A DNA stretch of 64,000 nucleotides from Lepidodermella squamata (taxonomy: Eukaryota > Animalia > Gastrotricha): NCBI GenBank assembly GCA_047495785.1, contig JBLDXI010000074.1, positions 1,302,001 to 1,366,000 of the forward strand, read 5' to 3'. The notes under the pieces are model-generated. The model made no database searches. It saw nothing but the letters and a program-made list of their open reading frames with translations, and was not told the DNA's origin. Shown here in pieces: positions 31,488 to 53,317 of the stretch (positions are counted from its first letter, which is position 1; each line of letters begins with the position of its first letter). Position numbers and translations under genes: made by a program.

Positions 31488-33875
31488 ATGCGATTGAGTC
31501 TAATTTACGAAAGAGCGAGACGATCGCACAAGTTGTACCCGATTACTGCCTGCCTAGCTATCAGCTTTTTCCTGATTATTCTTGCTAATTACCGGTTAGC
31601 ATCTGAGCCTAATGAGTCGAGATTTTCACCCTTTCCAGACGAATCTATCCTCGCGAAACAGAAACCACTCAAGAACAGTGCAGCAAGCCTGATTGCCGAA
31701 AAGCCAACCCCTCCGAACGTAATTCTGCCACCAAATGTAGTCTTAGTCCCAATCGTCCGGCCAGAATCATCCTACGCCCTTAAAGTTGCAGTTCTTATCG
31801 TGGCGATGAATCTGGGCTCCATGGAGGAGGCGTTTAACGTCATTCTATCAGGCCATGCATTCTTTGAGAGCGAACTAGGCAACGCCTATGCGACTTACTA
31901 CGTTTTCATGAACGAAGATGGCATTTCTCTGAGTATCATGGAGAACCATTTGGGCTCAGATCTCTCGAGGCGCGTTAAATTAGTCTTTATCGGTGACAGA
32001 GACCTTACGCAGGCTTCATACGACGACGCTCCGCTGAGATGTACGATTTACCTTAAATCAGAGCTTCTGCTAAGGTTTAACAGGGTAACTATTGATTACA
32101 AAACACTTTCTCTTCTATTCAAGACTCTAATGAAAGACATAACTTTGAAATTAGTAATGAAGCTTTGTTTGAGCAATTGCCTCTGATAATATATGAAGAA
32201 TTTGCACTTGATTTTTGTATTTCAGACCTACGACATGATATTTTCCGTCGACATTTCCATGCGATTTCGGGCCAAGTTCACTAAGGAATTGGAAGACAAT
32301 AATGCCGGCTTCCTGGCCAGGACGAAAAAGGCGAAAGAGCCTGTTCTGAAGCTAACTCTACCTCAATCAATTTTTGCGTTGGAACACCCTGATTACATAA
32401 CTTCCTCTCACGAGCTCGATGGGGTTGATCAAGAGGAAGCGGACTTGGAGAGGAACAAAGTACGCCTGAAATTCCCATTCGAAACCTCAAATCGTAAATC
32501 ATGTGGCTATGTGCCCAAATCAAGAGCTGAGAGCGTTAAATACTACTACAGCAGCTTGGTTTTTGGCGGGAAACCAAACGACTTCCTATCAATGTGCAGC
32601 AGCCTCGCCGACTGTCGCCAGCACGATTTGAATATCGGAATTTTCTACATTGACAACAATGAGATTTACCTGAATGCATACCTTCACAATATCACGACGT
32701 CTTCACCGCTTTCGAACGGCTTGGACAAGATTATCGGGCCGAAGAGTGCGCAAACTACAGATGATGAGATTAACTATGAAAATTATCGTAAAAGCCTAAA
32801 ACAATTTCGGGTCGCCCTAAGAAGTGTTCCGGAAAGCTTGAATTGCAAAAAGCTCGAACCCCTGACAAGTGATTTCTTGTCGAGTCTTGCAGATGAAAAC
32901 GCGACGGTGGCTGAACTGGAGTTCAAATATTTTGCCCCAATAGCAGAGCTGTTGAAGACTTCAAAAAGCGACTGCCCTGTTAAATTTCTCATCTATTCGT
33001 GCAGCCAAAATTATTGCGGGAATTTGAATGCCCAAATTCGAGGTATGGTTACTGCGGCCTGGCTAGCTATAACATCAGGTCGAATTTTCAACGTCGACGG
33101 GACACAAAACTCGAAGTTATCGGACTTTTTCGAATTAAACAGCCATTTCTATTCTGGGATAGATCATGAGGTTTACTCTCAGCATTTTAACATTGCGGCC
33201 AACAAATCACGAAGGGTCTATCTCAAGAGCAGCCTGGTGAATCTGACGCAAAGATTCAATTCTTTGCAATCGGTGACAGATTTCATCGCCCTTCCGAATC
33301 AAATTGCATCCGCCAATCAATATTTCAGCTCAGCAATTCTGAAGAAGGTCTTTGGACGGCCGAAACAAAGACTCATCGATTTGTTCAACCGCTGTGTGGT
33401 GAATACATCCCCTCTCGACTGGAATTCCTCTTACAAAATTGGAGTCGAGTTAAGTAAATCGGATTCAGTGGACATTAATTGCTACACAAACGAAATTGTT
33501 CGAATTTTTAGCGCAGAGACGATAAATGAGCGGACAATTGTGGTTTTTGTTATCTCTGACCATGAAGAAATACCCCGGGACTTGCAAACTGCAATTTTAA
33601 ATCATTCTTACACTGCAAAATCTGAAAAGCTAGTGGGAGTGTACTCAATCGGCCAAGCGAAAAGTTCAAACATGTTGCCAAATGCGGATCGACATGCGAA
33701 GGATACTCCTGACGATAAGACTGAAGCTCATCAATACCTCAATTGGCTGGCATTTACTCGAATGGATAGACTGATCATCGCAGAACATGGCCTCGGCGAA
33801 ACTGCGGCTCTCTTTTCACTCCGGCCTGCCTTTATACTAGAAAATAGCCGGAAATGTGCAATTTCTTTGTTATGA
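31488..33875 (+). CDS. Type II membrane fusion protein: degenerate GT6 (ABO-type) domain followed by a degenerate fucosyltransferase-like domain
   Basis: Exons 31488-32084 and 32226-33875. N-terminal TM anchor. GT6 part: KVAVLIVAM, YDMIFSVDISMRF, EHPDY, FPFE, YYYSSLVFGG, NEIYLNAYL. FUT part: CPVKFLIYSC..YCGNLNAQIRG..LAITSGRIF, YKIGVEL, VFVISD, MDRLIIAEHGLGETAAL. AATAAA follows the stop. Confidence 0.85.
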
Positions 33876-34072
33876 GTCGTGTTAATAAACGCATGGATGA
33901 AATTTGCTCAGGCTCATCTTTTCTAGTATTTAAATGCTTGAGCTACATTTTAGTTTAGTTTTCTCGCGGTGGAGAGAAAACAATAGCTAACGTTCGTTGC
34001 AGCTACGAAGTACTTAATGAGTTTTTTGGGCTTTTTGGCTATATATGTGAATATTTTAGCATCAGCTGCTCC

Positions 34073-35095
34073 ATGGTTATAATTTCTATATTTTCTCACC
34101 GCTTATCGGCGAAATGGTTGAAGGCTCTGATAGTTTTAATATTTGTCGGCTTAATTTTGCTAATGATCTCTGATAAGCCAATGAATTCAGAAGCTTTGAA
34201 TTTGAAGCTCAAAAAACTCAAAAACCAAAGCTCAATGGATTTCGGCGAAGTAGTGAACATTGGTTTTTTAATCATGGCAACTAGCCAGTACGCTGCTTTG
34301 ACACCACGCATGATTGAATCAGCCCGAAAATACCTCAATTTTACAACACACGAAACTCGTGGTACAAAACATCGGATATTTTACTTTATTTTCACGGATA
34401 AGTTGGACGACATTGCGAATGGTAGCGATGTGCTCGGGATCTATCAGAAGCGGCTCAGTTGGCCTTCAGTCACCTTATTAAGAAACTCAATCTACCTAAA
34501 TTCAGCGAATATTTACGAGGAACTGGTACAGAACTAAATTAGTACTTTATCCGATTTACATATAAATTCTTGGTTTCAGAGCATTGATTATCTGTTTTCA
34601 ATAGACTCAGATATGCTTTTTGAGTCTCACGTTGGTTCGGAGATCCTAGGCGACCTTGTTGGAGCCCTGCATCCTGGCTACTATATGTACCACAACAACC
34701 GAGATTTTCCATTCGAGCGCCACTGGGGCGAATCGTGCGCCGCTATTCCCGAAACTGACACGAGAGCAAATCGCTACTTTTACGGTGCGATTTTCGGTGG
34801 GAAGCGGCTGAATTTTCTGGAGCTATGTTATGCGACTACGAAATGCATAAAAGAGGACATGGACCGAGGCGTTTTAGCCGAATGGCACGATGAGTCTCAT
34901 TTGAATCGATATTTTTTAGACCATCCGCCTACTTTGGTACTCTCACCAGCTTACTGCTACCCCACAATATATTCGCTGCCGTTTGAAAGAAAAATTGTTG
35001 TCCTGGCAAAAGACCATGATGCGATTAGAGGAACGCGGTCTATGAGGAGATTGCTTTCAGATTTGTATTGGTATTTGAGGAGCTTCGTAGTGTAG
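34073..35095 (+). CDS. Glycosyltransferase family 6 (ABO/alpha-1,3-Gal/GalNAc transferase-like), type II membrane
   Basis: Exons 34073-34525 and 34580-35095. Motifs IGFLIMAT.QY, YFIFTD, WP..TLLR, DYLFSIDSDM (DxD), GDLVGALHP, FPFER, YFYGAIFGG, AEWHDESHLNRYF, LSPAYC, KDH..IR. Confidence 0.92.
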
Positions 35096-35287
35096 CCTGG
35101 TGGTGCCGGTCAAATAAAAGCGCTTAATTACGTAAGGGTTCAACATGATAATTTATTGATCTCCATTGAAGCAATAAACAGGCTTTTATAACACGCTCCA
35201 CGAGTTATTCCTTCATGAGTTTTCTAAGAGTTTCATATATCGTCAGTATGCGATTATAGAATTTTCAGATCCACCGCCTGATTTATT

Positions 35288-36826
35288 TTACCGAAAATCA
35301 ATCTCCGACTTAAGCCCACTGTACAACTCGAATAAAGCTGAGCAGTCAAACGTGGGACTGTTATTGCCGAGGTTATTGTCCATTTCTTGCTGCTTCCAAT
35401 GCGCAAATTGCCATGTAGGAGCCTGGGAGTATAAAGAAGCTGTGTGGCCATAACTCGACCGGCTGATGAGCAGCATGTCGGCCTGCGTCAGAATCGTCCA
35501 ATCTACAAAAACCTTAGCGAATTCGAACCAAGCATTGTCAGGTTGTGTAACGTCGGATCTATCCAAGTGCTTCAACGGCAGAATTCGATTGGTGTCGAAA
35601 ACTGTCGCGCTCATGTTGCTGAGATCGCTCTTGAGTTCCTCAAGTGCCTCAACAGAATCACCGGTCAAGAAAATTACTTTTTCCAACTTGGGATCGATCA
35701 TTGAGATCAGACGGCGAATTTTCGAGGTGAAGCAAGAGATCTGTGAATTTTCGACCCTTGACCCACCTTCGCCCCAGGTCGATCGCAGGGTTCGAATCTG
35801 AACCCCGATTTTGACTGCGCTACTCCAAGATTCTCCGTTCAGTCTTGTTTCGTTTTCAATTACTTGCGAAATCAAATTATCAAGTCGTGAAGTTCGCTTT
35901 CCAAGAAGTAGTCTCAGTGCAACGGATGCAATAATCGAATAATCTGTCGATGCATTTGCTGTAGCTGGAAATAATCGCTGAAGATTTGCGAACGACGGAT
36001 TTTGGAAGATCGACTCCAAAGCTTTTAGGCGATTGGTCGTTCCATCCCAAGAATCCCAATTTTCCAGGCGGTTTTTGACAAAATTCGGATCCGCAAGGTC
36101 TCTGATCAACTGATTACCGTCGTCATCAATAAGTCGCCAGTAATTTCGGATTTTCAATGACTTCGTTCGATGTTCTTGATACAGATGTTCAAAAGCGTCT
36201 TTCCTGGTTGTGTAGAAGCCATCGTAGAAACCTTCGTTCACTCGAAAGTATTCAGCAATATTGACAGGCTTCGCCCAGTCGAGGTGGAAAATTCTATTCG
36301 AAGCCACTGCTGTGAAGAATAGGGAGGCGACGCCTTTGAGCCTATCGCCGAAGCCGCCGCAGGATACCCCGTTATCACAAGAATAGGCAACAAACTTGAA
36401 GAAAACACAATATAACAGTCCATTATTTCTGACAGAATATCGACTCACTTTCAGCCGAGATTTGCCTGGATTGCTCTCGAGCGATCTTGTGATATTGCGG
36501 TAATAAGAATTTCTGAGGCTTGAAATAATTTTCTCGATAGATTTACGGCGAATTTCCGCCTCGGAGATTAGATCTCTCAATTCGGAAGGCGTAATTGCGA
36601 TGTGAATCCTAGAACGTTGGTTAGAGCTCAATTCACTTGCCTCAATGATGGGAGAAATTCCGAGTGAGATTCCTCCGATTGTAAAATTCGATTGGAAGAG
36701 ACTCCGGGAGAAAAAGATACGCCCAAACAGAAAGAATCGTAGATCAATAGCTTCCAACCGCAGCAGAACGATGAACGCGAGAATTAAAAATGGCAAAATA
36801 AGCCAATGCTTTGTTGAAAGTTGCAT
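35288..36826 (-). CDS. Fucosyltransferase-like protein (alpha-1,2/alpha-1,6/O-FUT superfamily, GT37-like motifs), type II membrane
   Basis: Likely ATG at 36826 (MQLSTKHWLILPFLILAFIVLL). Motifs CGGFGDRLKG, KIGVQIR (motif I), IFLTGD (II), FVDWTILTQADMLLISRSSYG (III). Probable in-frame 54-nt intron near 36449-36396. Confidence 0.85.
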   Translation of the reverse strand: MQLSTKHWLILPFLILAFIVLLRLEAIDLRFFLFGRIFFSRSLFQSNFTIGGISLGISPIIEASELSSNQRSRIHIAITPSELRDLISEAEIRRKSIEKIISSLRNSYYRNITRSLESNPGKSRLKVSRYSVRNNGLLYCVFFKFVAYSCDNGVSCGGFGDRLKGVASLFFTAVASNRIFHLDWAKPVNIAEYFRVNEGFYDGFYTTRKDAFEHLYQEHRTKSLKIRNYWRLIDDDGNQLIRDLADPNFVKNRLENWDSWDGTTNRLKALESIFQNPSFANLQRLFPATANASTDYSIIASVALRLLLGKRTSRLDNLISQVIENETRLNGESWSSAVKIGVQIRTLRSTWGEGGSRVENSQISCFTSKIRRLISMIDPKLEKVIFLTGDSVEALEELKSDLSNMSATVFDTNRILPLKHLDRSDVTQPDNAWFEFAKVFVDWTILTQADMLLISRSSYGHTASLYSQAPTWQFAHWKQQEMDNNLGNNSPTFDCSALFELYSGLKSEIDFR

Positions 36827-36863
36827 GTAAATAATGTCTAATCGATAAAAATGAATCCCAAAG

Positions 36864-37880
36864 TTAACCAATTTTTTTTGAAATAGTTATTATTCTAGGA
36901 TCAAGAGGTAGTTTCCACTTCTCAGGATAACAATAAGCTGGGCTCAGTGCGGTTGTAGGTTTGTGCTCCACAAAATATCGATTTAAATGTGATTCCTCCA
37001 TCCATAATGCTGTATAGTGGTCTTCAGTCATAAAGTCTTTCCTAGCACACTGTGATATGTGGCTGCATAGGTCTAAGAAATTGCTTCGTTTGCCTCCGTA
37101 AAGTGCGCTGTGGAAGTATCGCGTAGCTCGTCTGTCTGTTTCATTGATTGCAGCGCAGGAATCAAAATTACGCTCGAAGGGAAGCTTAGCGTTTTCATTA
37201 ACCCGATAGTAACTGGGATGCAGAGCGCCTACCAGGTCGCCGATTAATTCTCGGCCAACTTCTGATACGAACAGCAAATTAGCGTCCATAGAGTAGAGGT
37301 AGTCAATGTTCTGTAAAAATATGTGATCACGGCATTGCTGGGATTATATGAATTTTGACCTAACCAATTTCTCGTATAGGTTTGTAGAATTGAGGTAGAT
37401 GCCACATCGCCATAGATTCCCTTTCGGCCAGCCAATGTAAGGCTCAAGCACCCGGACGACATCGTTCACATTATCGATGTCTTCCGGTCGATCAGTGAAT
37501 ATGAAAAAGTAGACCTCAAACGCTCGACCGTCTTTCTCTGATCTCGAATGAAGATTCAAATGGACGCGAGCTGAATCAGCCAAACGATTCGACATTTTAG
37601 CGTACCAGCCGGTTGCCATTATCAGAAAGCCAATTTTAAAAACTGTTACTTCTAGATCCTTTGTAGTTGAGGAGCTCACTGTTTTTGTATTGAGAGCTGA
37701 AGACAATTTCGGCTTCGAAACAAGAGTACGAATGGTAGTGGAGTTGATATCGGTTTTCTGATCCCTTGACAACGAGAAAGCAGCCAAAACAGCCAAAATG
37801 ATCAAAAATATGACAAAAAGCTTGAAGGAAGACAGCCGTCTGTTAATATTAAGTGCCATGACTTCGTCTGTAAGAAGCAT
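36864..37880 (-). CDS. Glycosyltransferase family 6, type II membrane
   Basis: Exons 37880-37365 and 37310-36864. Motifs KIGFLIMATGWY, YFFIFTD, DYLYSMDAN, GDLVGALHP, LPFER, YFHSALYGG, WMEESHLNRYF, LSPAYC. Confidence 0.9.
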
Positions 37881-39184: not shown

Positions 39185-40284
39185 CTAGCTTGGAGGCTTG
39201 GCATGCGTCACCATCCGTGCGGCTTCGTGGTCCTTCATCATGGCCATGATCTTCATTTGGTAAGGCAGCTTCATGCCTAAATGTTTGCAAACTTTGTGAT
39301 TAAATCTAAAGAACTCCAATTTTCTTGGTAATTTTGTGGAAATTTTAATGTTTTTTAAGCTTACCTTGGCCGAAGCAATAAGCTGGGCTAAGAATGAGCG
39401 TAGGCGGTCTCACGAGAGCGAAGTAGTGATTTAAATGCGACTCGTCGTGCCAAATCGCCGTGTAAGACCCCTTCAAAGCTAGATCTTTCTCAATGCCAGC
39501 AGTCGTCACGTTGCACAGCTGTAGCACTTCCAAAGTTCGACCACCAAATACGCCGCCTGCAAAGTAGTTGGTGCCCTTGTTAAGAGGAATGTAGGCAGCA
39601 GATTTCGGATCTCGCTCGTAGTGGAACTCGTAGCGGAAATTGTTGACCCAGCCTGGGTGCAAGGTCCCAACGAGATCGCCCAGAATTTCTGGACCAACTG
39701 GTTGGACAATCATGAGATCAGCATCCAGTGAAAATAAGTAGTCCTCTTCCTAGAATTTAAATGTTGCTAGATCCATAATTCAGCCAGAATTGGTAAGATT
39801 TATCGGAAAATTAAGAAATATCGTTATCGAAATTTATACTTGCAGATTTACCTACTTGCTCGAGAATATCCCGCGATTTGATGTAGACCGAGCACCGCCA
39901 AAGGGTATCCGATGGCCAGCCTAGACGTTTTTGGTAGATAACAACAACGTCATCACCGTGGGGGGCTTGCTCTGCTCTATCCGTGAAAACGTAGAAGCTC
40001 AATTGATATAGCTGGCGCTGTTCGGGCGTCGCGAACATGTATCGCCGTGCTGACATGATGAGGAAACTTGAATAGCGAGCATAACGCCCTGTTGCCATGA
40101 TGAGAATACCGATTCGAATCTTTCGGCTTACAACGAAGCAATCAGGCGGGGTAGTAGTAGCATTAGATGCTTCAGCCACTGGTATGAAATTTGGCTCGGA
40201 GATTTTACTAAGGCTGATAAAATTCGCTAACAGAAAACCGATTGCTATTCCGACTAAAAATTTAGCATATTCGAATGAAAACAT
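39185..40284 (-). CDS. Glycosyltransferase family 6, type II membrane (most canonical copy)
   Basis: Exons 40284-39856, 39749-39365 and 39276-39185. Motifs IGILIMATGRY, FYVFTD, DYLFSLDAD, GTLHPGW, YERDPKSAAYIP..KG..YFAGGVFGG, AIWHDESHLN, LSPAYC, MKDHEAAR. Confidence 0.93.
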
Positions 40285-42890: not shown

Positions 42891-43554
42891 GCCGGCGTAT
42901 GTTTTTTCGCCGGTGAAATTTTAATACGCCGGGGCGCCCACAATAATAATTATGTTTATAGCTGCAGCTTTGAATAACGGAAATAGTATATTGTAACTGG
43001 TGTAGAGCTACCTAAGAACTAAAACAACCCGAAAATATTTCATTTTATACTTTATTTCAGGCTTTACTTTATCAGCGATATCATTGAAATTCAAATCAAA
43101 TAAAGTTTGACATTTTTCACGATATTCGCATTTTTCGGTCGGTTGTCACCTTCTGAGCTCTCGAAAATTGGCAAGCCGTCGATTTGTCCAGATTTAGTCC
43201 TCAATCGCACTATTTTTCGCTCGCCGGCGTATGTTTTTTCGCCGGTGAAATTTTAATACGCCGGGGCGCCCACAATAATAATTATGTTTATAGCTGCAGC
43301 TTTGAATAACGGAAATAGTATATTGTAACTGGTGTAGAGCTACCTAAGAACTAAAACAACCCGAAAATATTTCATTTTATACTTTATTTCAGGCTTTACT
43401 TTATCAGCGATATCATTGAAATTCAAATCAAATAAAGTTTGACATTTTTCACGATATTCGCATTTTTCGGTCGGTTGTCACCTTCTGAGCTCTCGAAAAT
43501 TGGCAAGCCGTCGATTTGTCCAGATTTAGTCCTCAATCGCACTATTTTTCGCTC
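42891..43554. repeat. Apparently exact 332-bp tandem duplication covering the 3' end and 3' flank of a GT6 gene
   Basis: Units 42891-43222 and 43223-43554 both begin GCCGGCGTATGTTTTTTCGCCGG and end ACTATTTTTCGCTC; no differences seen by eye. Confidence 0.93.
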
Positions 43555-44508
43555 GTACGGCAGAGCAGTGAACGTGGCTTCTTCTGGATAGCAATAGCTG
43601 ACGTTTAAAATCCTACTCGGTCTTGTAGGCCTTTCCAAAATCTGTCGATTGATGTACGCTTCATCCAGAAGAGGTGCTACGTAATTGCCAGCGTCGTAAA
43701 TGTCGTGTTTCACGCATTCGGAAATTTTCTGGCACAATGCCAAGAAGGTTTCCCGCTTTCCGCCGAAAATTGAGCTTGTGACGTAGTGCTTACCTTGAGA
43801 CATGTAATTCTTCAACGACGCACAGCTTCGCCTTGATTTCTCGTAAGGAAACTCGTAACGTTTCTTATTGATATAACCGGGGTGATCTACAGCGAATAAA
43901 TCTTGCAAGAGTTCCGCGTCAACTTGAGCAACAAAACGCATGTCGGCATCTAATGAAATGAGGTAGTCCATTGAATTGAGATAATCGGAATTTCTTGCAA
44001 GTTTAACATAGCTTGAGCAGCGGAGTAGGGAGTCGAAAGGCCATCCAAGGCGATTTTGCCTCACTACGACTATATCTTGGCCTCGAGGCAATAAATGCTT
44101 ACTCTGGCGATCGGTAAAGATGAAAAATGTTATGGATGACTCGTTTGAGACTAGAAAATGTTGTCTCGCCGAGGCGACTAAGGCTTCGGTTTGCCTCGCG
44201 TATTCCTCCTCAACTGCGTAGATCAAGATCCCAATTTTTCGGTTGATTTTTTCAGAGGTATATTTTTGAAAAATCGGAGGTAAAGACCTTCCGTAACGCT
44301 CCAAGTCCATCGCCCGGTCATAGGCCTCCATAATAGCTGCATCATGCTCAGTGAACTGGTCACTTGTGTCAAAACGGGTAACCAGCGAGTTGAACACATA
44401 TTCAGCTACTGACAGGAAAATGATCAGGACGGCTCCGATGATGAGAAGTAAACAGGAAATGAGGCTGAGGACTGGTAAAATCTGGCAAGATCTGCGACGT
44501 AGATTCAT
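43423..44508 (-). CDS. Glycosyltransferase family 6, intronless, type II membrane
   Basis: Single ORF with TM anchor and motifs KIGILIYA, FFIFTD, LGWPFDSLLR, DYLISLDADMRF, HPGY, FPYE, YVTSSIFGG, LLDEAYINR, SYCYPE. Confidence 0.9.
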   Translation of the reverse strand: MNLRRRSCQILPVLSLISCLLLIIGAVLIIFLSVAEYVFNSLVTRFDTSDQFTEHDAAIMEAYDRAMDLERYGRSLPPIFQKYTSEKINRKIGILIYAVEEEYARQTEALVASARQHFLVSNESSITFFIFTDRQSKHLLPRGQDIVVVRQNRLGWPFDSLLRCSSYVKLARNSDYLNSMDYLISLDADMRFVAQVDAELLQDLFAVDHPGYINKKRYEFPYEKSRRSCASLKNYMSQGKHYVTSSIFGGKRETFLALCQKISECVKHDIYDAGNYVAPLLDEAYINRQILERPTRPSRILNVSYCYPEEATFTALPYERKIVRLRTKSGQIDGLPIFESSEGDNRPKNANIVKNVKLYLI

Positions 44509-44943
44509 TTTGAATAATATCAATAATATTCAGCGATGAGAAATGATCTCAGGCTAAATAATATAGTTATTTGGCTCGCGAGTAGCGTTATTACACTGAT
44601 GCGGCTAATTATGGCGCTCCGTTGATCCAAAATCAATTGATATAATATCGCTTATAGCTTTATGACACGCGATAAGGAATCAGCGTATAGCATCGAATCG
44701 GTACATGTGGCTAAAGACTAAAGACTTGATCGACATTGATCTACGTGCAGCAATAGGGATGGGCCTGTACATACCTATATTTAAAAACCGTATTAAAACA
44801 TATCGTTAGCGTCGTTGAATCACTCGGATTTAGGCTTGTTTACGTCCGGTACAAATTCACGGATGACAAGTAAAAATCGGTTTTTTAACGTATGAATGGA
44901 GAGGCAAAAAAATAATGAGTTAAATGGTGAGCGCTGCGTAAAC

Positions 44944-46166
44944 CTGAGTGAGTGTAGCAGAATTAGGAGAAGCGCAACGAGCGCTCAAAATCTGTGCGAG
45001 TGTAGCACCACTCGGTGTTATGTAGCAAATCTGAAGTACCGTAGCAAAAATCTGAGTGAACGTAGCAAGTCGAAAAAGTTATAATTACAGATTATTTAAA
45101 ACATTTAGTAAAATTATTCAAACAAAATTGAATTGGGCAATTCCATGTCAATTGGACCGACTACCCAACCCATGTTTTCAGATCATCGCGAAACATTTTT
45201 TTCGGATAGAGCTCGAAAAACTAAGGTATTTTTAGTAGGTATTTTTAGGTATTTTTATATACTCTTGCGACTTTTGTTAACACTTGATTGTTAACACAAT
45301 TAATGATTATGAATTTCTCTGAAAAAGAAGGATCTTCAACTGAGGGGGTGGGTGATTTCCATCTTTCGCCAGCCTTCGCCCTCTTCAAAACCGTTTATCG
45401 ATACGGACATTGACTATATGAAAATATTACTATTATTATTATTTATATACTCTTGCGACTTTTCATCCCACGCAGTCGCTCACCTGTAAAATTCAAAACG
45501 TGAATCCATGGTATAGACCCTAAAATCGACGGATGGAAACAATTCTCAACATGAAAAAACTAATGTTCTTATAATTTTCAAAAAATTTCCGGATAAGCCA
45601 ATCGCGGCAGAAGAATGGCAAAGTTGCCATAAACCTGCAAAGACAGCTGTTTTCAAAAATGCTAGGAAATTAATTATGAGAGCCTGCAAGATTTAGCTGG
45701 GCTCATTCGATAGACCGCGAAATCTAGTATTTATCCGCCTAAACACAACAAATTTGAGAATGATTATTTAATGAAAATAATTAAATTTATAACGAGCGTT
45801 AGGTGTCATAAAGTGGTCGCGTGCCGCATCTTTGCGAATTCAGCTCGAATAAAGTCACTATAGAAAGATCGTTTGCTTCCTATCTGTTACAGTGCTGTCT
45901 ATGCCAGATACGAAATTTCTGTCGGCTTCGTCCATAATATAACAACTTTTTACAAAATTCAGTTTTGATCAAATTGCTACGTTCACCCTTATTTTTGCGA
46001 CCGTCGCACCGCCTGCCGCGTCAAAGCACGCGTTTACGCAGCGGATTAGATGAATGCGCGACGGATTACGTATAAGTGCTACTAAACACGCGTTGCTGCT
46101 ACACTGTTTTGATTTCTGCTACGTTCACTCTGCAGCGCAACTCACTTTTCTGCTACGCTCGCTCAG
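44944..46166. mobile_element. Probable non-autonomous DNA element with inverted ends and GTAGCA/TGCTAC subterminal repeats
   Basis: CTGAGTGAGTGTAGCAGAA (44944-44962) matches the reverse complement of TTCTGCTACGCTCGCTCAG (46148-46166) at 17/19. Multiple GTAGCA on the left, TGCTAC on the right; no coding ORF. Confidence 0.55.
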
Positions 46167-47233
46167 CCACCCAAAAATAATAGGCTTTTCACTTTTCACC
46201 TAGACCATCTTCTTGAAATGGATATAAACAACACGTAAAGAACAAGGATTTCTAAATCCGAGTTATTCAATGACGCTAGCGATATAGTTGAGAAGTAGTT
46301 GAGTAGTAGTTGAGAAGTACGAAAAACTTCAATTTCTTTGATAGTATCGTTCGAAAGAGAAAGATTGAAGTTTTTCGTACTTCTGATAAAAACTATCATA
46401 GCATTTAATCATAGCCGAAATGAATTTCTGCTTTATCGATCGGTGCTCGTATTGGCTACCATCAAACAATCTGCAAGCTGAATTCTGGTTTTTTAGCTAG
46501 TTAGTGTTGCTTCCGCGTTGGCGTAAATGCAAACTCGGAGGGTTAACGCTCTGATGTGCAAATTTGAAAACTTGTTCTTGACGGACAAAAGCTGTGCAAT
46601 CGGTTTTTGAGACCCTACAGGACACCTGTGACCAACTTGAATACACTAGAACACCTAATTACGCGCTTTTTAACACATTAGTGGATTAATTTCACACCAA
46701 AATCGATGAAATCAGTGATTGATTGGAAATCGCGTATTGATTATTGGCAAGATAATTGTTGCCCAGTGCCAGCGAACAGCTCGATATTCCGTGATTCAAC
46801 CCTTTCCAGCAGCAGATGGAAAAAACCAAGTCTATATTGGTATCACCTCAAGGGTCTCAACAATGTCGAAATGACGAAGCAACGAAGAAGCCACAACCTC
46901 AAAAGCTATAGCTATTTTTCATGTTATCTTGGCAAACGCGCCCCGATCCTGCGAAACCGAAATGTCTGGTTATTTTGGGGGAATCAAATTCTGCAACAGC
47001 TACGATTACAGGCTGAAAGCCTTGCTGAGAGTAACAAATTACTTGTGTTTAGACTAAGATCGATATTTTAATATGCAGCCGACTTGTTCCATCTTATTCC
47101 ACTAGAGCAATCAACTCAGCAGAGGTTATCATTCTTATAAGAATAATGGCTTGAGTGTTCTCGTTTAATAAGACGGGCTTGGTTTCGATGCACAGTTGAT
47201 AATTACAAATGTCGCACCGTAAAACAATGCAAA

Positions 47234-48973
47234 ATGAATTACGTCAAGATAAGCGCCGCTGTCAGTTCGGTCGTACTCCTGATTTTCCACGTCATGGTCA
47301 CGTTTTATAACATGGACACTGGAAAACGCCGAGCAATCTCCGACGCTCTTTCAGGTCAAGCATCATCATCGAATAACTATGGCGGCACGCAGGATTCGTC
47401 ATCATTTTGTCTCGACGGCTCGCAGATGCGAAGCCCTCTAAATAGAATCGATTGGGCTCAGAAAGCAGCGAATGTCTTTGAAAAGAATTCGTTGAATATG
47501 CGGAAACCGCTTGCTGAAGTAGTTAGACATTACAGAGAGCCATACTTCAAGAAAATTCGGCATTCTATATTGGTATGTAATTAATTGCTCATTTTTATTA
47601 TTCTCAGCGATTAGTCGTTGACTGCCTTGCACCTTGCTTATATCCATTTTTATCCCTTATTCGTCGTTTTTTCGGACTGGTGAATCGGTTTGGACATGTT
47701 GAATATATCATGCGAAAAGTGTCTTCTCCTTTTATAGAATATCTGTTCATTATTTTAATAGAGCAAGGAGTGTAAGCCGAAGTATCTTGTTTATGAATGC
47801 ACCAGAGGCAGTCTATGCGGCGGACTAGGCGATCGCCTGCGAGGAATAGTAGGCCTTTTCTACCTCGCAATGGCCACAAATCGCATCCTTCACATCGTAT
47901 GCGACAAACCACCGGCAAAACTCGGAGATTTCTACAAAATTAATGCCGAGCTTTACTTTGACTCTTTCAATTCGAGTGGGCAATATTTGACTACAAAGCA
48001 GGCGATTGACATTTACAGGGTACGGCTGTTCAGAGCTCGGCGCAGAAGTGCTGCTTGGTATGGCTTTTTGAACGCTGACGACGAGCAGGGTTACATTGTT
48101 TTCGCTAAACAAATGATATCTAACCTAGGGAAGAATCACACAGATTACATCGGAGTTATTACTAACAGCTTTTCTGTCCTAAATGCTGCGTTCGAACAAA
48201 GTTCCGGAACCAATTTTGAGAAGGTATATTTGAACTAAACTCGTCGTCACAAGTCCTGATTAAATTGCATAATTTCATAACTATAGGCTACCTATTTTTC
48301 CTTCTTGATTTCAGCTGGTCTAAGAATACTGCTCAGCCATCCTAAAGACGTAATGTTACAAGCTCATGATGATTTGATCAAGTCATCATCCCTTACAAAT
48401 GCCGAATGGAATCGGTTATTTAAAATTGGACTGCAAATTAGGGGTGGCAAGTCGCAGTATGAAGATGTGGGTGGCCGGGTTGGAACTAAGAGAGAGGCAA
48501 GTGGCAGCAGGTTTTAACCTCAACACGTAAAACATACCGAATTTTCACAGCAAAATTGCTTCATTGACCAAATCTTTCAAACAATTTCAAACCATTCGTC
48601 GATTCAATCAGGCGAAAGATCGATTCGCGATTTCCTAGTTTTTGTCACAACGGATAATGAAAACCTGACGAATTACGTTACTACGATTCTAGCGACAAAT
48701 TACTCTATCAAGGCATTGAAATCGCCCGGTAATTCAATTCATTTGGACAAGGCCACGTCGGCAGATAGCGCTTCAAAAATCAAGCCGTTTCTCGACTTTT
48801 ACTTGTTGTCACAAATGGATGCGCTTGTTATTAGCCGAAGTGGTTTCGGAGAGCTGGCGTCGCTGGCAAGTCTCGTGCCAACCATGCGATTCAGAACGAA
48901 AGAAGAGGCCACGGGGCAAGCCCTTTGTTACTTTTATCCGTGGCGTATAAAGAATAACTTTATGGAGCGTTAA
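47234..48973 (+). CDS. Fucosyltransferase-like protein (GT37-like motifs), tandem copy 1
   Basis: Exons about 47234-47572, 47762-48222, 48287-48496, 48551-48973. TM anchor; CKPKYLVYEC...CGGLGDRLRG, FKIGLQIR, VFVTTD, FLDFYLLSQMDALVISRSGFGE. Confidence 0.87.
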
Positions 48974-49258
48974 CAATAAACATCCTTTGCTCAAATACTA
49001 TAATGATGAAGCCTAGTTTCATGGGGCATTAATTGTCAAAGACTTTGTGGTGTGGCGTATAACCGGCAGAATATTAAGTTTTGACTTATTGTAAAGATCT
49101 CTGCTACAACGTGGGACCTAGTAACAACTTGATAGCCAACCGCTCGATACTTAGTCCGTCGCTCTGAGTGCCGATCTCACTTGCATTGCTTAGAAGGATT
49201 GGTCTTCCGGCATGGTAGTCAAAATCAAAGAGTGAAGAAAGAGAACAGTTATAGAGAA

Positions 49259-50947
49259 ATGTTTCCCTTTCAGCCATGCCTCACTCTTGCATTTTCTATG
49301 CTACTACTCAGCCGTATTCTGTCTATTTTCATGAATATGGACTCAGAGACTGTTCTTGCTATGATCAGCTTCTTGACAAAGCATCCAATTCCCTTGAGTT
49401 CACAGAAGGACAGGTCCGGAATGTGCCTTGACGGAACTCCACTCGATCAGTCAATTCTGGAAGCCAATCAACCATCAATCAAAGTAGTTCTCAGCTACAG
49501 CAAACATTCCGAAAATGAAAGTAAAATCGTGGACTCGATGGTCAGGCAGATCGAAAAAAGCTATTTCAGCAAAATCTATTTCTCAATAATGGTTTGCCAG
49601 CTATTTGAGCCGATTTAATTTTAAATAAGTATCAAGTTTTCAGCGCGAATCTTGCCGGCCTAAATTCCTAGTCTATCGCTGTTCCAATGGCGATACTTGC
49701 GGTGGAACAGGTGATCGAATTCGTGGCATTACAGGACTTCTCTACCTTGCCATGGCTACCAATAGCATTCTTCACATTGCCTGGGACAAATACCCAACTA
49801 AACTAAGTGATTTCTTCATCAGTAACGCGAATCTTTACTTCTCAACCTTGCCGAAGCAAATGTTTGATGAAGCGGTGAGAAAATACGAAAAGAGGCGCCT
49901 AGAAGCTAGGCGAGGATACAAGTCGATGTTCAGGTTTTTGGACGACAGGGGTGAGCATACGTTCACCAAGTTTGCTGAAGAATTGATCGCAAACCCAAAT
50001 AAAAGTCCAGTTCGGTATTCCCAGGTCAATGCGAATATCTTGGTATCAATGAGCGCTGTCTTCCGGCCGATCTCCAACGACAACGAACAAGATCTCCAAG
50101 CGACCAAGATGTGGCGAAATCAGATTGTCTTCTTGCGAGAATATTTTCCAGAGATTTTTCCGACCGCAATGCAATGGGTAAATTCTAAAAATGTGTTACA
50201 ACTTCCTTCAACTCTCAATAATAATTTAAATAATTAATTGGATTTTCCGTATTTATGTATTGAATGTTAATTTTTTCAATAGGAAATCAGAGTCCCTCTC
50301 TTTATATCCGCTGCTTTGAGATTACTGTTCCAGCGGCCAACGCCCAGGCTGCAAAACGCTTACAACACTATCATGACCTCGCCCGGAGAGTGGAATCACC
50401 TTTTTAAAATCGGCGTTCAAATACGAGTAGGCATTTCGAAATACGAAAACGTCGCCGTTAAAGTAGGAACTTCCAGAGAAGTATTTTTTCTAAAAATCTG
50501 AATGTTCGCCTACTATAATTTTATCAGCTTTTAGATTGCTTTGTCAAGCAAGTGCTCGAAACCATATCGACTTTGAGTGACAGATCAAAAAACGAATTCC
50601 TAGTGTTTGTAACTAGTGACCTTCAAAATGTGACAGATTACATTACGTCGACTTTGGTAGCTGAGCATTCGATCAAAGCTTTTCAGTCACCTGGCGAGTC
50701 GATTCACGTCGACAAGATAGCAAAAGGTGGAGAGTCGCCAGATGAAGCTTCAGTAACCAAGCTTTTTCTTGACTTTTACTTGCTGTCTCAAATGGATTCG
50801 CTAATCATAAGCCGGAGCGGATTCGGTGAGATGGCATCGCTCAAAAGCCTCGCGCCTACAATGCGTTTTAGAAAGAATGAAGAGTCGAAAGTTCAGTCAA
50901 TGTGTTATTTCTACACATGGCGGTTGAAAAGCTTGGGCATGGAATGA
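49259..50947 (+). CDS. Fucosyltransferase-like protein (GT37-like motifs), tandem copy 2
   Basis: Exons about 49259-49591, 49644-50177, 50283-50480, 50528-50947. Motifs CGGTGDRIRG, FKIGVQIR, VFVTSD, FLDFYLLSQMDSLIISRSGFGE. Confidence 0.87.
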
Positions 50948-51545
50948 ATAAATAATGCTGTAGAAGTTAGAAGTTCTTAGAGACTGTGTTAAACCCAGAT
51001 TTTCAAAGGTGCAAGGTGCAAAGACCAATCTCCTGAGGAATAAGATTTTTGTATCGCAGTGATTAGTGATTTATTTCAACGCTATGTAATAAAACGCAAT
51101 GAATATTCGTGATAAGCAACTTGCATAGCTGTGGGGCTTCCCGCAGCTCACGACGGCTACGCATTTCTTTGCTTTTTCGATAAGTCCTTCAAGTAATGTA
51201 TAATAAGTACTTCGAGAAATCACACGAACGTTATTGCTGGAGTATTCATCAGATGAAATTCATTCAAATTTTAAATAGCGTAGTTGAATAGTTGTTGTTG
51301 AATGAAGGAATAACAAGCTCTATTTTTGTCGAAATGAATACTTGCGCTGAGCTCATTCACGAATGACGTGACCGTCAATATCCATGTAGTATATGCTCAT
51401 TTATTCATCCTAATCAAACATGCGGCTGCGAAGTTGCCGGTCTTCGGTGAGATACCAACCGCTCAGCCGATCGATTAATCATGCCAGCCAACACTACAAC
51501 GTCGAACAAATCAGCACGGACCGCTTCATTGTGCAATGCGACTTG

Positions 51546-53317
51546 ATGCAGCTAGCTAAATTGTCGATAGTCGCTGGATCTTTCCTCCTTATCCTTGGCA
51601 TGAGTCTGATTTTCACGAGCATGGATACGAATACGCGTATGGTCATGTTCAATTCGGTTTTGGGTCGAAAACAGCAAGATGCCTCGCAAATGATTGAGCT
51701 GCCTGATGAAGCTATGAGCCCATCCGCAGTTGAAGTCACTGGGGATAGTTATGTGAGCGGCTCTGAGATGTGTCTTGATGGGACGCTGCCAAAAACAGCA
51801 TCTACTAGCAATTTCTCTTTGGAAATCGACGTTATCTACAAGCAATACGCTAACAATGCTAGCGAGATAGTTAATGCCCTTGTGAAACGATTCAAAGACA
51901 AATATTTCGCTAAAATTCAGTATTCAATAATGGTGAGTTGAGTTTTCCTATGTTTCCAATCGGGGACTATTGTAGAAGCTCCAGCAACTTTTTTACATTC
52001 TCCTTTCAGCGCCGAAACTGCAATCCTAAATTTCTCGTCTATCTATGCTCAAATAACATTGTCTGCGGAGGATTGGGCGACCGACTCCGTGGTGTAATCG
52101 GCCTTTTCTACCTCGCAATGGCAACAAACCGAATCCTGCACATCTCATGGGAAAAATCACCTGCAAAACTGAGAGAATTTTACAAAATCAATGCTGAGCT
52201 GTACTTTGGAGATCTTCTCGGTCAGTCGCTCAACTATAACCGGGCGGTGAAAATGTACGAAATGCGGCTTGATAGAGCTAGGTCACGCTTCAACGCGTTT
52301 CGCTTCACGTTCTTGGACCGGGTCGATGAGTGGCGGTATATCAAATTCGCGGAAGGCCTCGTCGCTGATCCGACAGGCAACACTGCAGAGTACCTCGAGT
52401 TCAACACGAACAGCTTCATAGCAATTTCAGCTGTTTTCCGGCCGAGCTGTTTTGGTAACGAAACTTCAAAAGTTTTCAGACAAAATCAGTTCTTCTTTGC
52501 GGAAGAATATTTTTTCGACTTATTCCAAGCTGGAGACGGGGCGAGAAAACTAGTAAATTTTTATATTGAGCTCTCGCGATAATTCCTCATGAATTCAAAT
52601 TTAGGTTATCAACTTTCCAATTCTGGTTTCAGCAGGATATAGAACTTTGTTCAACCAACCGGAACGAAGGCTTCTTAGATCTTACGAAAGCTTTGTGAAA
52701 GGTTCTGTTGGGGCTTTCGTTGGTTGGAATCGCCTAGTAAAAATTGGTGTTCAAATTCGGGCTGGGAAAACTCAATATGAAGACGTAGACGGTCGAGTTG
52801 GAACGGAAATGAAAGTTAGTTACCTAACCCAGCTTACAGATACAATGTACAAGTTGCATTTCAGCAAAACTGCTTCATCGAACAAGTCTTTCAAACAGTT
52901 TCAAACAGCTCTTCTCCACTGCTGGGATCAGAGGTCGTCAACAAATCGACAAGTGATTTTTTGGTCTTCGTAACTGCGGACAATCAAAGTGTAACTGATT
53001 ATGTGACTTCGATGCTGATCTCGAATTACTCAATACGGGTTGTTCAATTCTCCGGCCATTCGATACACCTTGACAAAGTTGGCTCATCGGCTAGTGAATC
53101 GGAGGATGAAGCAGCTGTTAATAAACCTTATCTCGACTTTTACATATTGACGCAAATGGATGCTCTCTTGATAAGCCGCAGTGGCTACGGGGAGATGGCT
53201 TCTATTGCTGGCCTAATGCCAACTATCCGTTTCAGAAAGGAAGCTGAGGCCTCTAACAGACCGTTTTGCTATTTCTACAAATGGAGTTTACAAACTCATT
53301 TTATGGAGAGGAGGTAG
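51546..53317 (+). CDS. Fucosyltransferase-like protein (GT37-like motifs), tandem copy 3
   Basis: Exons about 51546-51932, 52010-52552, 52605-52814, 52865-53317. Motifs CGGLGDRLRG, VKIGVQIR, VFVTAD, YLDFYILTQMDALLISRSGYGE. Confidence 0.87.

Follow-up and report, generated by a model that had tools for sequence, protein, structure and literature searches.

In mammals, the ABO gene and the FUT1/FUT2 genes lie on separate chromosomes. Glycosyltransferases of family GT6, which includes ABO, have been stated not to be found in invertebrates (PMC3961637). The chlamydial GT6 of Parachlamydia acanthamoebae (PaGT6) needs Mn/Mg, transfers GalNAc only to 2'-fucosylated acceptors, and is inactive on LacNAc (PMC3516806). 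Fucosyltransferases (FUTs) of family GT37 have been described as plant-specific; among them, AtFUT4/6 are alpha-1,2-fucosyltransferases whose acceptor is arabinose, not galactose (PMC7900004). We analyzed a 64-kb stretch of animal DNA (the window) in which GT6 and FUT-like genes are clustered.

Results

A tblastn search that took one protein of each family as query located five GT6 and five FUT-like domains in nine intact genes at positions 31488-53317, exactly those that the original prediction had placed in a cluster of ~22 kb, and no GT6 or FUT-like region elsewhere within the 64-kb window. The ten domains span 21.8 kb, and catalytic residues are conserved in 8 of them. An N-terminal membrane anchor was present in all nine products and GT-AG or GC-AG introns in seven of the nine genes, as had been claimed (Golgi-type anchors on all, introns in nearly all). 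Each product has a single hydrophobic stretch within its first ~40 residues (19-residue Kyte-Doolittle mean 1.98-3.09) and no further stretch of like strength after it, which fits a type II anchor. The introns of the spliced gene models measure 47-189 nt, all GT-AG bar one GC-AG, and the nine ORFs stay intact over about 16 introns with proper splice sites. Together with the introns, the animal flanking genes (myosin V IQ/DIL, Cys-loop receptors, and REEP-like TB2/DP1) and the even GC content over the window bear out the view that these are animal genes and not contamination. Cys-rich secreted-type genes were also seen within the cluster and beside it.

Four genes encode stand-alone GT6 proteins, each with a predicted type II anchor: GT6_2 (34073..35095, + strand; exons 34073-34525 and 34580-35095; 322 aa, 1 intron), GT6_3 (36864..37880, - strand; exons 37880-37365 and 37310-36864; 320 aa, 1 intron), GT6_4 (39185..40284, - strand; exons 40284-39856, 39749-39365, and 39276-39185; 301 aa, 2 introns), and GT6_5 (43423..44508, - strand; 361 aa, no intron). 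The earlier GT6_4 ORF was incomplete, its third exon having been missed; this exon brings back the conserved C-terminus with Lys-Asp-His. A duplicate of the GT6_5 3' end (43094..43249, - strand; last ~55 codons plus 3' flank) is not a gene; it is 82% identical to GT6_5 residues 307-361 (tblastn), and the flank is repeated too. The proposed HMM search with Pfam PF03414 (GT6; cut-off 25 bits) put these four genes above the cut-off at 85-112 bits (exon 2 of GT6_2, 109; of GT6_3, 90; of GT6_4, 112; GT6_5, 85) and the fifth GT6 domain, that of the fusion gene, below it. The GT6 genes align over their full length with the solved BoGT6a, ABO, and alpha-3GalT, with PDB scores against BoGT6a and ABO of 105.5 and 97 bits for GT6_2 and 82.5 and 68 bits for GT6_5. 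The catalytic Glu is present in all five GT6 copies and DXD in three. GT6_2 carries DSD, HPG, YGA, and WHDES, and GT6_4 carries DAD, HPG, AGG, and WHDES; GT6_5, the most diverged intact copy with a long branch in the tree, has DAD, HPG, and TSS, with the acceptor-stacking Trp replaced by Leu, and GT6_3 has DAN in place of DXD together with HPS, HSA, and WMEES.

At the acceptor positions, whose roles were assigned from PMC3516806, we found His at A1, Gly or Ser at A2, and Val, Thr, Ala, or Leu at A7, matching GTA/GTB/BoGT6a and not the Gln/Trp/Trp of alpha-3GalT. These residues argue for sites suited to a fucosylated (H-type) acceptor and not for sites of the alpha-3GalT kind. A/B/alpha-Gal-like surface glycans had been predicted; the acceptor residues favor the A/B-like caps but not the alpha-Gal part, which is built on unfucosylated LacNAc (PMC3516806). 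The published donor code (PMC5377540), in which AGG gives A specificity, YGA gives B specificity, and HAA is the GGTA1 motif, derives from a human enzyme backbone that is only about 30-35% identical to the window GT6; against it, GT6_4 has AGG, GT6_2 has YGA, and GT6_3 has HSA.

In the phylogenetic tree, the four Pfam-passing GT6 formed one clade among the DXD-type GT6 of Chlamydiota, which also gave the best matches found (38-47% identity, 138-191 bits; human ABO, 68-97 bits); exon 2 of GT6_2 scored 97 bits with ABO compared to 136-144 bits with chlamydial GT6. A phylogeny with bacterial sequences had been proposed as a check, and this placement makes the suggested horizontal-transfer origin of the GT6 genes plausible, although the tree was built without vertebrate GT6 sequences and therefore does not settle the direction or source of transfer. 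The GT6 genes may descend from a single ancestor with its closest relatives found in Chlamydiota, introns being gained and duplication coming after.

The four stand-alone FUT-like genes, whose products also have predicted type II anchors, are the intronless, GT37-like FUT512 (35288..36826, - strand; 512 aa), FUT_A (47234..48973, + strand; exons 47234-47572, 47762-48223, 48287-48496, and 48551-48973; 477 aa), FUT_B (49259..50947, + strand; exons 49259-49591, 49644-50177, 50283-50480, and 50528-50947; 494 aa), and FUT_C (51546..53317, + strand; exons 51546-51932, 52010-52552, 52605-52814, and 52865-53317; 530 aa). Each exon of FUT_A/B/C was found by profile match, one FUT_A splice site pair is GC-AG, and 49259 and 51546 are the most likely starts of FUT_B and FUT_C. 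The FUT512 start lies 37 nt downstream of the GT6_3 stop on the same strand, with a pyrimidine-AG right before the ATG. The motifs CGGxGDR, KIG(V/L)QIR, and SRS(G/S)(F/Y)G are present in FUT512 (as CGGFGDR, KIGVQIR, and SRSSYG) and intact in FUT_A, FUT_B, and FUT_C; the GxGDR, KIGVQIR, and SRSGFG quoted earlier recur here in their family forms.

No FUT-like protein reached the threshold of any Pfam family, the family scored 10.6 bits with Pfam GT37 (PF03254) against a threshold of 23.4, and no member matched Pfam GT11, whereas the family profile searched against the PDB matched fucosyltransferases only (AtFUT4, 9.3e-15; AtFUT1, 4.5e-9; FUT8, 9e-5; NodZ, 4e-4). The AtFUT1 R284K mutant scored 6.4 bits below the wild type in the same search; therefore, R284 of AtFUT1 is aligned to the invariant Arg of the FUT-like family. 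The AlphaFold model of FUT512 (pLDDT 92.2, pTM 0.92) had AtFUT1 as its best Foldseek match (1.6e-14), and VIA-align ranked AtFUT1 (Z 21.7) above FUT8 (Z 19.1), NodZ (Z 18.5), and POFUT1 (Z 16.0), with POFUT1/2 among the further fold matches and the best non-fucosyltransferase GT-B at Z 10.5. These results agree with the claim that the FUTs are nearer to plant GT37 than to FUT1/2-type GT11. The AtFUT1 PDB entry is named 'galactoside 2-alpha-L-fucosyltransferase', and the characterized GT37 enzymes considered here (AtFUT1, AtFUT4/6) are all alpha-1,2-fucosyltransferases. Because the family falls below the Pfam GT37 threshold and is ~18% identical to AtFUT1, the linkage and acceptor of AtFUT1 are not confidently transferable to it.

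FUT_A/B/C form one clade (SH-aLRT 97) with intron positions common to all three, a local triplication. Orthologues of every FUT lineage occur on other animal contigs (30-42% identity), and the FUT copies of the window belong to three old lineages, not to one local array. The family also occurs in protist/algal contigs and in a marine protist transcriptome.

The remaining gene is the GT6~FUT-like fusion (31488..33875, + strand; exons 31488-32153 and 32226-33875; 771 aa), an intact ORF with one 72-nt GT-AG intron that encodes a TM anchor, a diverged GT6 domain, and a FUT-like domain in this order. Its GT6 domain scored 15.6 bits with PF03414 and 46 bits (E 3.7e-14) with a GT6 profile built here, and keeps the catalytic Glu with DXD changed to DIS; in its FUT domain CGGxGDR has become CGNLNAQ, KIGVQIR has become KIGVEL, and the invariant Arg is gone. 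The fusion gene is probably catalytically dead, and since catalytic residues are lost in both halves, a bifunctional enzyme is a less likely reading than a paralogue that is non-catalytic or regulatory.

Proteins of 600-800 aa from related animals (P0001, P0003, P0005, P0009, P0012, and others) consist of a decayed GT6-like N-domain followed by an intact FUT. These N-domains keep the FFGG...C donor-site motif; DXD and the greater part of the acceptor loop are gone. Pfam recognizes none of them, and structure prediction gave a pLDDT of 52. On contig L054, also from a related animal, a decayed GT6 gene comes after a FUT-like gene. Examining synteny in relatives had been proposed earlier, and the fusions and adjacency found there back the functional coupling of the two families. 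About 30 of the 49 fetched bacterial GT6 loci contain a GT11 alpha-1,2-FUT within 8 kb, often adjacent, and the FUT-like profile scored only ~12-23 bits on these GT11 proteins. None of 16 protist/algal FUT-like loci, many of them short, had a GT6 nearby, and among the sequences examined, fusion of GT6 and FUT-like domains was confined to the animal lineage. The cluster had been called independently assembled, which holds in the sense that bacteria use GT6-GT11 and the animal GT6-GT37-like.

Discussion

We favor, with a probability of about 0.5, a predicted pathway in which the FUT-like enzymes would make Fuc-alpha-1,2-Gal and the GT6 enzymes would cap it with alpha-1,3-GalNAc/Gal. We infer that the two enzyme families encoded by these nine Golgi-type (type II membrane) genes are co-expressed and most likely act consecutively on one glycan. 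FUT512 and FUT_A/B/C would first transfer fucose from GDP-fucose, with inversion, onto a terminal galactose, most likely in alpha-1,2 linkage, giving an H-antigen-like Fuc-alpha-1,2-Gal. The metal-dependent DXD-type GT6_2 to GT6_5 would then add alpha-1,3-GalNAc or alpha-1,3-Gal to that galactose, and, to judge from how they differ at the ABO 266-268 positions, both A-like and B-like caps may be made. An H-type acceptor is also supported by the chlamydial DXD-type GT6, the group of PaGT6, which are the nearest relatives found. Counting against this pathway are the DAN of GT6_3, the missing acceptor-stacking Trp of GT6_5, the arabinose acceptor of AtFUT4/6, and the protist FUT-like loci without GT6. 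Overall, the original prediction is partly supported: it stands in its enzyme families, animal origin, and gene clustering, but not in its alpha-Gal part, and its fusion is probably not bifunctional.

Somewhat over half as probable is that both families are active on different glycans, their clustering reflecting shared regulation or tandem-duplication history. The FUT-like acceptor could then be a pentose or other sugar, as for AtFUT4/6, or a protein domain, and GT6 could cap glycans that carry no fucose or that received it from a different enzyme. Between the FUT-like family and GT37, whose acceptors already range over Gal and Araf, the relationship is only distant, and the local triplication of FUT_A/B/C, the Cys-rich genes inside and beside the cluster, and the protist members lacking a GT6 neighbor would also suit separate substrates. 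However, without a functional link it would be difficult to account for the repeated fusion or adjacency of GT6-derived and FUT-like domains in related animals. In addition, the residues at the GT6 acceptor positions are of a type that accommodates fucose, GT6 and an alpha-1,2-FUT come as a pair almost routinely in bacteria, and the type II anchors and stems speak against a POFUT-like soluble ER enzyme.

As the GT6 domain is decayed in the relatives' fusions, the conserved partnership may not consist of two consecutive catalytic steps. An active FUT could instead work with a non-catalytic GT6-derived module that binds nucleotide or glycan or scaffolds a complex, the intact GT6 being a side branch and the output fucosylated without an A/B-type cap. 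We consider this unlikely: although the related proteins and L054 have lost DXD in a GT6 that keeps FFGG...C and is no longer recognized by Pfam in the N-domains, with all FUT motifs retained, the four stand-alone GT6 of the window have intact ORFs and keep the catalytic Glu (three also DXD), the window fusion lacks the FUT catalytic Arg as well, and a pLDDT of 52 supports neither a fold nor a binding role for the N-domain. A largely decaying transferred remnant without present function, or an assembly or contamination artefact, is very improbable, since the eroded fusion motifs, the duplicate 3' fragment, the DAN of GT6_3, and the long branch of GT6_5 stand against nine intact spliced ORFs, catalytic residues kept in 8/10 domains, orthologues of the FUT lineages in other animals, even GC content, and animal flanking genes.

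A pathway of this kind for blood-group-like surface sugars has not been described in invertebrates; if the proposed pathway is true, it would have been built independently, from ABO-type GT6 and plant-like FUTs, in a small invertebrate genome.

Comparison with known systems

The DXD-type GT6 of Chlamydiota, such as the blood-group-A-synthase-like, metal-dependent PaGT6, are the closest sequences found for the window GT6 and have in common with them the DXD, the His-Pro-Gly acceptor loop, WHDES, and the C-terminal A7-x-x-Lys; the AGG donor motif of the PaGT6 type also occurs in GT6_4. In contrast to these ~245-aa, intron-free proteins, usually encoded near a GT11 gene, the window genes have membrane anchors, stems, spliceosomal introns, five copies, and diversified donor motifs (YGA, HSA, TSS). 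Vertebrate GT6 (ABO GTA/GTB, GGTA1 alpha-3GalT, iGb3S, and Forssman synthase) are less similar to the window genes than chlamydial GT6, but share with them the Pfam family, type II Golgi topology, DXD, catalytic Glu, GTA/GTB-like acceptor residues, and a multi-copy expansion in birth-and-death style. Unlike the unlinked ABO and FUT1/FUT2 of mammals, GT6 and FUT-like genes are interleaved in the window.

Plant GT37 (AtFUT1 xyloglucan alpha-1,2-FUT; AtFUT4/6 AGP alpha-1,2-FUT) are the best profile and structural match of the FUT-like proteins, with which they share a GT-B variant fold, type II Golgi topology, a GLG(N/D)R-type N-terminal motif, and IG(I/V)Q(I/V)R with the GDP-Fuc-binding Arg. Although GT37 is described as plant-specific, members of the FUT-like family occur here in an animal, on contigs of related animals, and on protist/algal contigs, and neither xyloglucan nor AGP can be the acceptor in the animal. 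Bacterial blood-group-mimic modules (E. coli O86 wbnI/wbnK type, Bacteroides, Akkermansia, and Chlamydiota loci) resemble the window in that GT6 is physically linked to a FUT of the alpha-2/alpha-6/O-FUT superfamily; their partner is GT11, whereas that of the window is GT37-like, and the window genes are eukaryotic, with introns and Golgi anchors.

A cluster of GT6 and fucosyltransferase-like genes

A tblastn search of the whole window with one GT6 and one FUT-like query returned five GT6 and five FUT-like regions, all between positions 31488 and 53317 and none elsewhere, the same number and place as in the original prediction; the two families are physically linked, with 5 + 5 domains interleaved over 21.8 kb. 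We built spliced models from conserved-frame junctions and splice sites chosen with profile guidance, and all nine were free of internal stops. The plus strand carries the GT6~FUT fusion (31488-33875; 771 aa), GT6_2 (322 aa) and, last in map order, FUT_A, FUT_B and FUT_C, with four exons each; the minus strand carries FUT512 (512 aa, intronless), GT6_3 (320 aa), GT6_4 (301 aa, three exons) and GT6_5 (361 aa, intronless). The introns and type II Golgi-type anchors that had been claimed for the cluster were both recovered. Short introns of 47-189 nt occur in seven of the nine genes, with GT-AG borders except for one GC-AG in FUT_A. One phase-0 intron lies at the same position, directly before the DXD block, in the fusion, GT6_2, GT6_3 and GT6_4, and all three intron positions are common to FUT_A, FUT_B and FUT_C. 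Each of the nine products has a single strongly hydrophobic segment close to the N-terminus and none further on, as in type II Golgi glycosyltransferases. Bacterial contamination, already discounted in the original prediction, is ruled out by the introns in intact ORFs, by a GC content that is even across the window (0.36-0.47) and by the animal genes flanking the cluster (myosin-V-like with IQ and DIL domains, TB2/DP1, and Cys-loop receptor genes). No Rfam family matched over the whole window.

The stop codon of GT6_3 is separated from the ATG of FUT512, on the same strand, by 37 nt (36827-36863). The ATG is preceded, at a distance of 11 nt, by a pyrimidine tract plus AG, and the spacer is a putative operon-like junction. 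Several other elements lie in the window. A short GT6 3′ fragment at 43094-43249 (minus strand) is a near-copy, 82% at the protein level, of the final ~55 codons of GT6_5; the 3′ flank of GT6_5 is repeated after it, indicating a tandem duplication of the 3′ end of the gene of ~330 bp. Two paralogous Cys-rich ORFs without Pfam match are found on the minus strand, one just upstream of the cluster (29908-30609) and the other between GT6_4 and GT6_5 (41299-42054), and a third ORF nearby (26364-27002, minus strand) has a weak match to the EB module (E 7e-4); that these ORFs encode secreted proteins and possible glycan carriers is pure speculation. The 2.7 kb between the divergent GT6_5 and FUT_A (44509-47233), with no ORF longer than 121 codons and no Pfam match, could be a regulatory region common to both genes. 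An ORF with a reverse-transcriptase (RVT_1) fragment at 14935-15765 (plus strand) is probably a retroelement remnant.

The stand-alone GT6 copies carry acceptor-site residues of the A/B type

The HMM search suggested in the original prediction, with the Pfam model Glyco_transf_6 (PF03414), gave 109, 90, 112 and 85 bits for GT6_2, GT6_3, GT6_4 and GT6_5, respectively, against a gathering cut-off of 25, and these four genes align with solved GT6 structures across the whole catalytic domain. The GT6 half of the fusion scored 15.6 bits, under that cut-off, but a profile made from the window copies and their relatives clearly recognizes it as GT6, with 46 bits (E 3.7e-14). By every sequence test applied, the GT6 genes of the window belong to this family.

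The Glu that is conserved and catalytic in all known GT6 (PMC3516806), E303 of ABO and E192 of the solved Bacteroides enzyme BoGT6a, is kept in all five copies within an aligned W-H-D-E-S block. The DXD motif is kept as DSD in GT6_2 and as DAD in GT6_4 and GT6_5, and is lost in GT6_3 (DAN) and in the fusion (DIS). With their Asp-X-Asp, GT6_2, GT6_4 and GT6_5 are predicted members of the metal-dependent subtype of GT6, that of vertebrates, phages and Chlamydiae. Three positions separate enzymes acting on 2′-fucosylated galactose acceptors from alpha-3GalT, as described by Thiyagarajan et al. (PMC3516806). GT6_2 to GT6_5 have His at A1, Gly or Ser at A2 (HPG or HPS) and Val, Thr, Ala or Leu at A7, as is typical of GTA, GTB and BoGT6a, whereas alpha-3GalT has Gln, Trp and Trp. 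These residues would fit enzymes of the histo-blood-group A/B type with a fucosylated acceptor. The equivalents of ABO residues 266-268 vary among the window copies, which have YGA, HSA, AGG and TSS. Yamamoto et al. (PMC5377540) tabulated a donor code on the backbone of the human enzyme: AGG there specifies A (GalNAc) and YGA specifies B (Gal), and the alpha-1,3-galactosyltransferases GGTA1 and A3GALT2 have HAA as their conserved motif. Carried over to the window enzymes, which are only ~30-35% identical, this code would point to candidate donors.

The window GT6 genes are closest to chlamydial GT6

With GT6_5 as the only query, a word-indexed search of proteins gave no relatives, and a metagenome scan with exon 2 of GT6_2 gave no match. 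An alignment query against a large protein collection found only six proteins, the closest being GT6 proteins of 245-281 aa with 38-39% identity, one of which is encoded on a Simkaniaceae contig of 1 Mb. Scanning one genome per bacterial species yielded 49 GT6 loci, most of them from Parachlamydiaceae, Simkaniaceae, Rhabdochlamydiaceae and other Chlamydiota, and all of these chlamydial loci have the DXD motif. Compared to Bacteroides or vertebrate GT6, chlamydial GT6 matched the window genes with much higher phmmer scores: 136-144 bits for exon 2 of GT6_2 (BoGT6a, 105.5; human ABO, 97) and 131-138 bits for GT6_5 (BoGT6a, 82.5; human ABO, 68).

In a maximum-likelihood tree without vertebrate GT6, for which bit scores to PDB chains stood in, the four stand-alone window genes formed one clade (SH-aLRT 97). 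An unresolved fork joins this clade to two groups from Chlamydiota and a single unlabelled sequence, and the fork is nested in a group of 40 rows that is otherwise almost entirely chlamydial. The clade and its position in the tree indicate that the four genes descend from one ancestor, closest to chlamydial GT6, and would fit a horizontal transfer, in either direction, followed by intron gain and duplication. For the GT6 genes, the earlier proposal of a cluster possibly seeded by horizontal transfer is plausible. The characterised chlamydial enzyme, PaGT6 of Parachlamydia acanthamoebae, is metal-dependent, transfers GalNAc onto H trisaccharide or 2′-fucosyllactose and is inactive on LacNAc (PMC3516806).

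The FUT-like proteins form a family next to plant GT37

No Pfam family scored above threshold for any FUT-like protein of the window. The best score was that of FUT_C exon 2 against XG_FTase (PF03254), with 10.6 bits and E 0.2 against a cut-off of 23.4, and FUT512 had no match to this model. Only four relatives were found by word-indexed search; when 1.84 billion representatives were scanned in full by HMMER with a FUT-like profile of six sequences, 2231 of them matched at E <= 0.001, of which 708 reached E <= 1e-10. Weak Pfam matches among 58 aligned family members were to XG_FTase (4), O-FucT (1) and NodZ (1), with PF03254 reaching E <= 0.01 in only 4 of the 58. The original prediction had placed these proteins nearer to plant GT37 than to animal FUT1/2, and the profile searches agree: GT11 (PF01531, the FUT1/FUT2 type) had no match in the window proteins or the 58 members, the FUT-like profile scored only ~12-23 bits against the bacterial GT11 proteins that lie beside GT6, and the 58-sequence profile hit solely fucosyltransferases in PDB, led by the plant GT37 enzymes AtFUT4 (9.3e-15) and AtFUT1 (4.5e-9) and followed by FUT8 (9e-5) and NodZ (4e-4).

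The sole invariant column in the 58-sequence alignment is an Arg. In the profile search the R284K mutant chain of AtFUT1 scored 6.4 bits under the wild type, and the invariant residue therefore corresponds to R284 of AtFUT1, in the IGIQVR motif; it matches the Arg of the GDP-fucose-binding motif of the alpha-2/alpha-6/protein-O-fucosyltransferase superfamily (GT11, GT23, GT37, GT65 and GT68). This Arg is kept in FUT512, FUT_A, FUT_B and FUT_C, as are CGGxGDR, KIG(V/L)QIR and SRS(G/S)(F/Y)G, the motifs quoted in the prediction. The FUT half of the fusion has CGNLNAQ and KIGVEL in place of the first two, and with KIGVEL the catalytic-motif Arg is lost.

AlphaFold modelled the catalytic domain of FUT512 with high confidence (pLDDT 92.2, pTM 0.92), and in Foldseek this model retrieved AtFUT1 first (1.6e-14), followed by FUT8, NodZ, POFUT2 and POFUT1. 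Alignment with VIA-align gave Z scores of 21.7 for AtFUT1 (rmsd 3.6 Å over 297 residues), 19.1 for FUT8, 18.5 for NodZ, 16.0 for POFUT1 and 15.5 for POFUT2, compared to 10.5 for the best GT-B enzyme that is not a fucosyltransferase. The profile, Arg and fold matches therefore predict that the family consists of GDP-fucose-dependent inverting GT-B fucosyltransferases. It shares significant profile homology and the GT-B variant fold with AtFUT1 and AtFUT4 of CAZy GT37, with scores under the curated PF03254 cut-off. By profiles and model, the family is nearest plant GT37 and outside its curated model, as an unannotated sister family whose members would work like GT37 enzymes and share their fold. 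Many relatives (P0007, P0023, P0024, P0029-P0036 and others) are 750-1220 aa long with 3-6 separate profile matches each. Such proteins may carry at least two FUT-like domains, or they may be artefacts of gene calling in genes with introns.

GT6 and fucosyltransferase genes are associated in bacteria and in animal relatives

A GT11 alpha-1,2-fucosyltransferase lies within the fetched 8 kb in ~30 of the 49 bacterial GT6 loci, often directly adjacent, so the pairing of GT6 with an alpha-1,2-fucosyltransferase is a general rule. A fused FUT domain is absent from the large bacterial GT6 proteins of Akkermansia (787 aa), Helicobacter (641 aa, a GT9+GT6 protein) and Opitutaceae (655 aa). On a Simkaniaceae MAG contig (CAWBSQ010000001.1; L004/L005) the chlamydial GT6 belongs to a glycan locus that also holds GT2, GT92 and pyruvyl-transferase genes; ~3.3 kb upstream of it is a 652-aa protein with GT11 in its C-terminal half and an extra N-terminal domain, which in other chlamydial loci is a separate gene. 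In three further loci (L044, L047 and L043; Akkermansia and a bin labelled Clostridiales) a protein of 765 aa, matching GT11 in its C-terminal part, directly precedes the 787-aa protein with C-terminal GT6, the two being large multidomain enzymes of a mucin-degrading gut bacterium.

The nearest FUT-like relatives lie on compact animal contigs from ENA metagenome assemblies, with a GC content of 0.36-0.40 and metazoan genes. Window copies fall in three old lineages of the FUT tree, each with orthologues on other animal contigs: FUT512 with P0001, P0002 and P0005, the fusion with P0006, P0008 and P0013, and FUT_A, FUT_B and FUT_C with P0015. The cluster therefore brings together paralogues that parted long ago, as opposed to a single array of recent origin. 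GT6 was found near none of the FUT-like members in 16 protist or algal loci (GC 0.56-0.71, with introns), many of them on short contigs, and the GT6-FUT association thus seems specific to the animal lineage. Two contigs (L057/L058) have a FUT-like gene followed by a Cys-loop receptor gene, as in the window; we rejected synteny because their FUT-like proteins (P0013/P0163) are not of the FUT_C lineage and the receptors are only ~20% identical. On another related animal contig (L003, 11282-12304, plus strand) a gene lying at most 64 nt after the FUT-like gene has a weak match to Gly_transf_sug (DXD sugar-binding, GT32-like) and would be a different glycosyltransferase partner.

Many FUT-like relatives are 600-800 aa long with the FUT domain at the C-terminus. 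Pfam GT6 had no match in the N-terminal halves of the long relatives; these retain the GT6 'FFGG...C' block, and several are weakly matched by the local GT6 profile, at the same profile positions. The window fusion aligns with one relative, P0003, by BLASTP (E 4e-6), which likewise ties these halves to GT6. An hhalign comparison of the relatives' N-terminal halves with GT6 was weak (P 0.0016 over 41 columns, probability 16%), and the AlphaFold model of the P0003 N-terminal domain had pLDDT 52 and pTM 0.28. L054/L055 carry a FUT-like gene and, 133 nt after it, a GT6 gene that has decayed but still matches GT6_4 by BLASTP (E 6e-8). The window fusion itself is probably a pseudo-enzyme, because key residues are gone from both halves despite a kept ORF of 771 codons.

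A proposed fucosylate-then-cap pathway from non-orthologous parts

Starting from the families, fold, catalytic residues, topology and physical linkage observed in the cluster, the best-supported reading is a two-step pathway, for which we infer donor, linkage, order of action and co-expression. Golgi GT37-like enzymes would make a Fuc-alpha-1,2-Gal (H-like) epitope, to which DXD-type GT6 enzymes would add alpha-1,3-GalNAc or Gal, with a donor preference that varies by copy. Against this reading stand the distance of the FUT-like family from GT37, the fact that GT37 acceptors are not always galactose (PMC7900004), and the fact that in relatives the GT6 member of the conserved fusion or pair has decayed catalytically. 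The same decay opens an alternative, in which the conserved partnership is that of a fucosyltransferase with a non-catalytic module derived from GT6. A joint reading, to which we tentatively assign a probability of roughly 0.3, is that an invertebrate lineage acquired a metal-dependent GT6 from bacteria resembling Chlamydiae and paired it with a GT37-related fucosyltransferase, not with the GT11 of bacteria and vertebrates, giving a third independent histo-blood-group-like system; the two domains would then have fused repeatedly, and in most fusions the GT6 half would have decayed into a conserved module that is no longer catalytic and that guides or regulates its fucosyltransferase partner. 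If true, this would be a previously undescribed pseudo-glycosyltransferase/fucosyltransferase architecture.

According to published work, GT6 occurs only in vertebrates, two protists, and certain bacteria and phages, and is 'not found in invertebrates' (PMC3961637), and GT37 has been termed 'plant-specific' (PMC7900004); the cluster challenges both statements. Our searches for GT6 or xyloglucan-type fucosyltransferases in rotifers and other invertebrates returned nothing relevant, and newer database entries may exist. The FUT-like proteins, with 2231 representatives, amount to a large, unannotated fucosyltransferase family without a Pfam model. If the glycans are confirmed, the cluster would bear on how ABO-type genes originated through bacterial-eukaryotic transfer, on glycan mimicry between intracellular Chlamydiae and their hosts, and on the ways in which animals come to have clustered and fused genes for making glycans.

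The known logic, in bacteria as in vertebrates, is to fucosylate and then cap with GT6. The window shares its physical linkage with the bacterial module of GT6 and an alpha-1,2-fucosyltransferase but differs in the partner, which is GT11 in bacteria and GT37-like here. What is new is that an animal seems to have rebuilt the same logic around a non-orthologous fucosyltransferase, and with domain fusions. The cluster offers a natural experiment: the A/B-antigen scheme was seemingly reassembled from other parts, and fusions tie both steps together.
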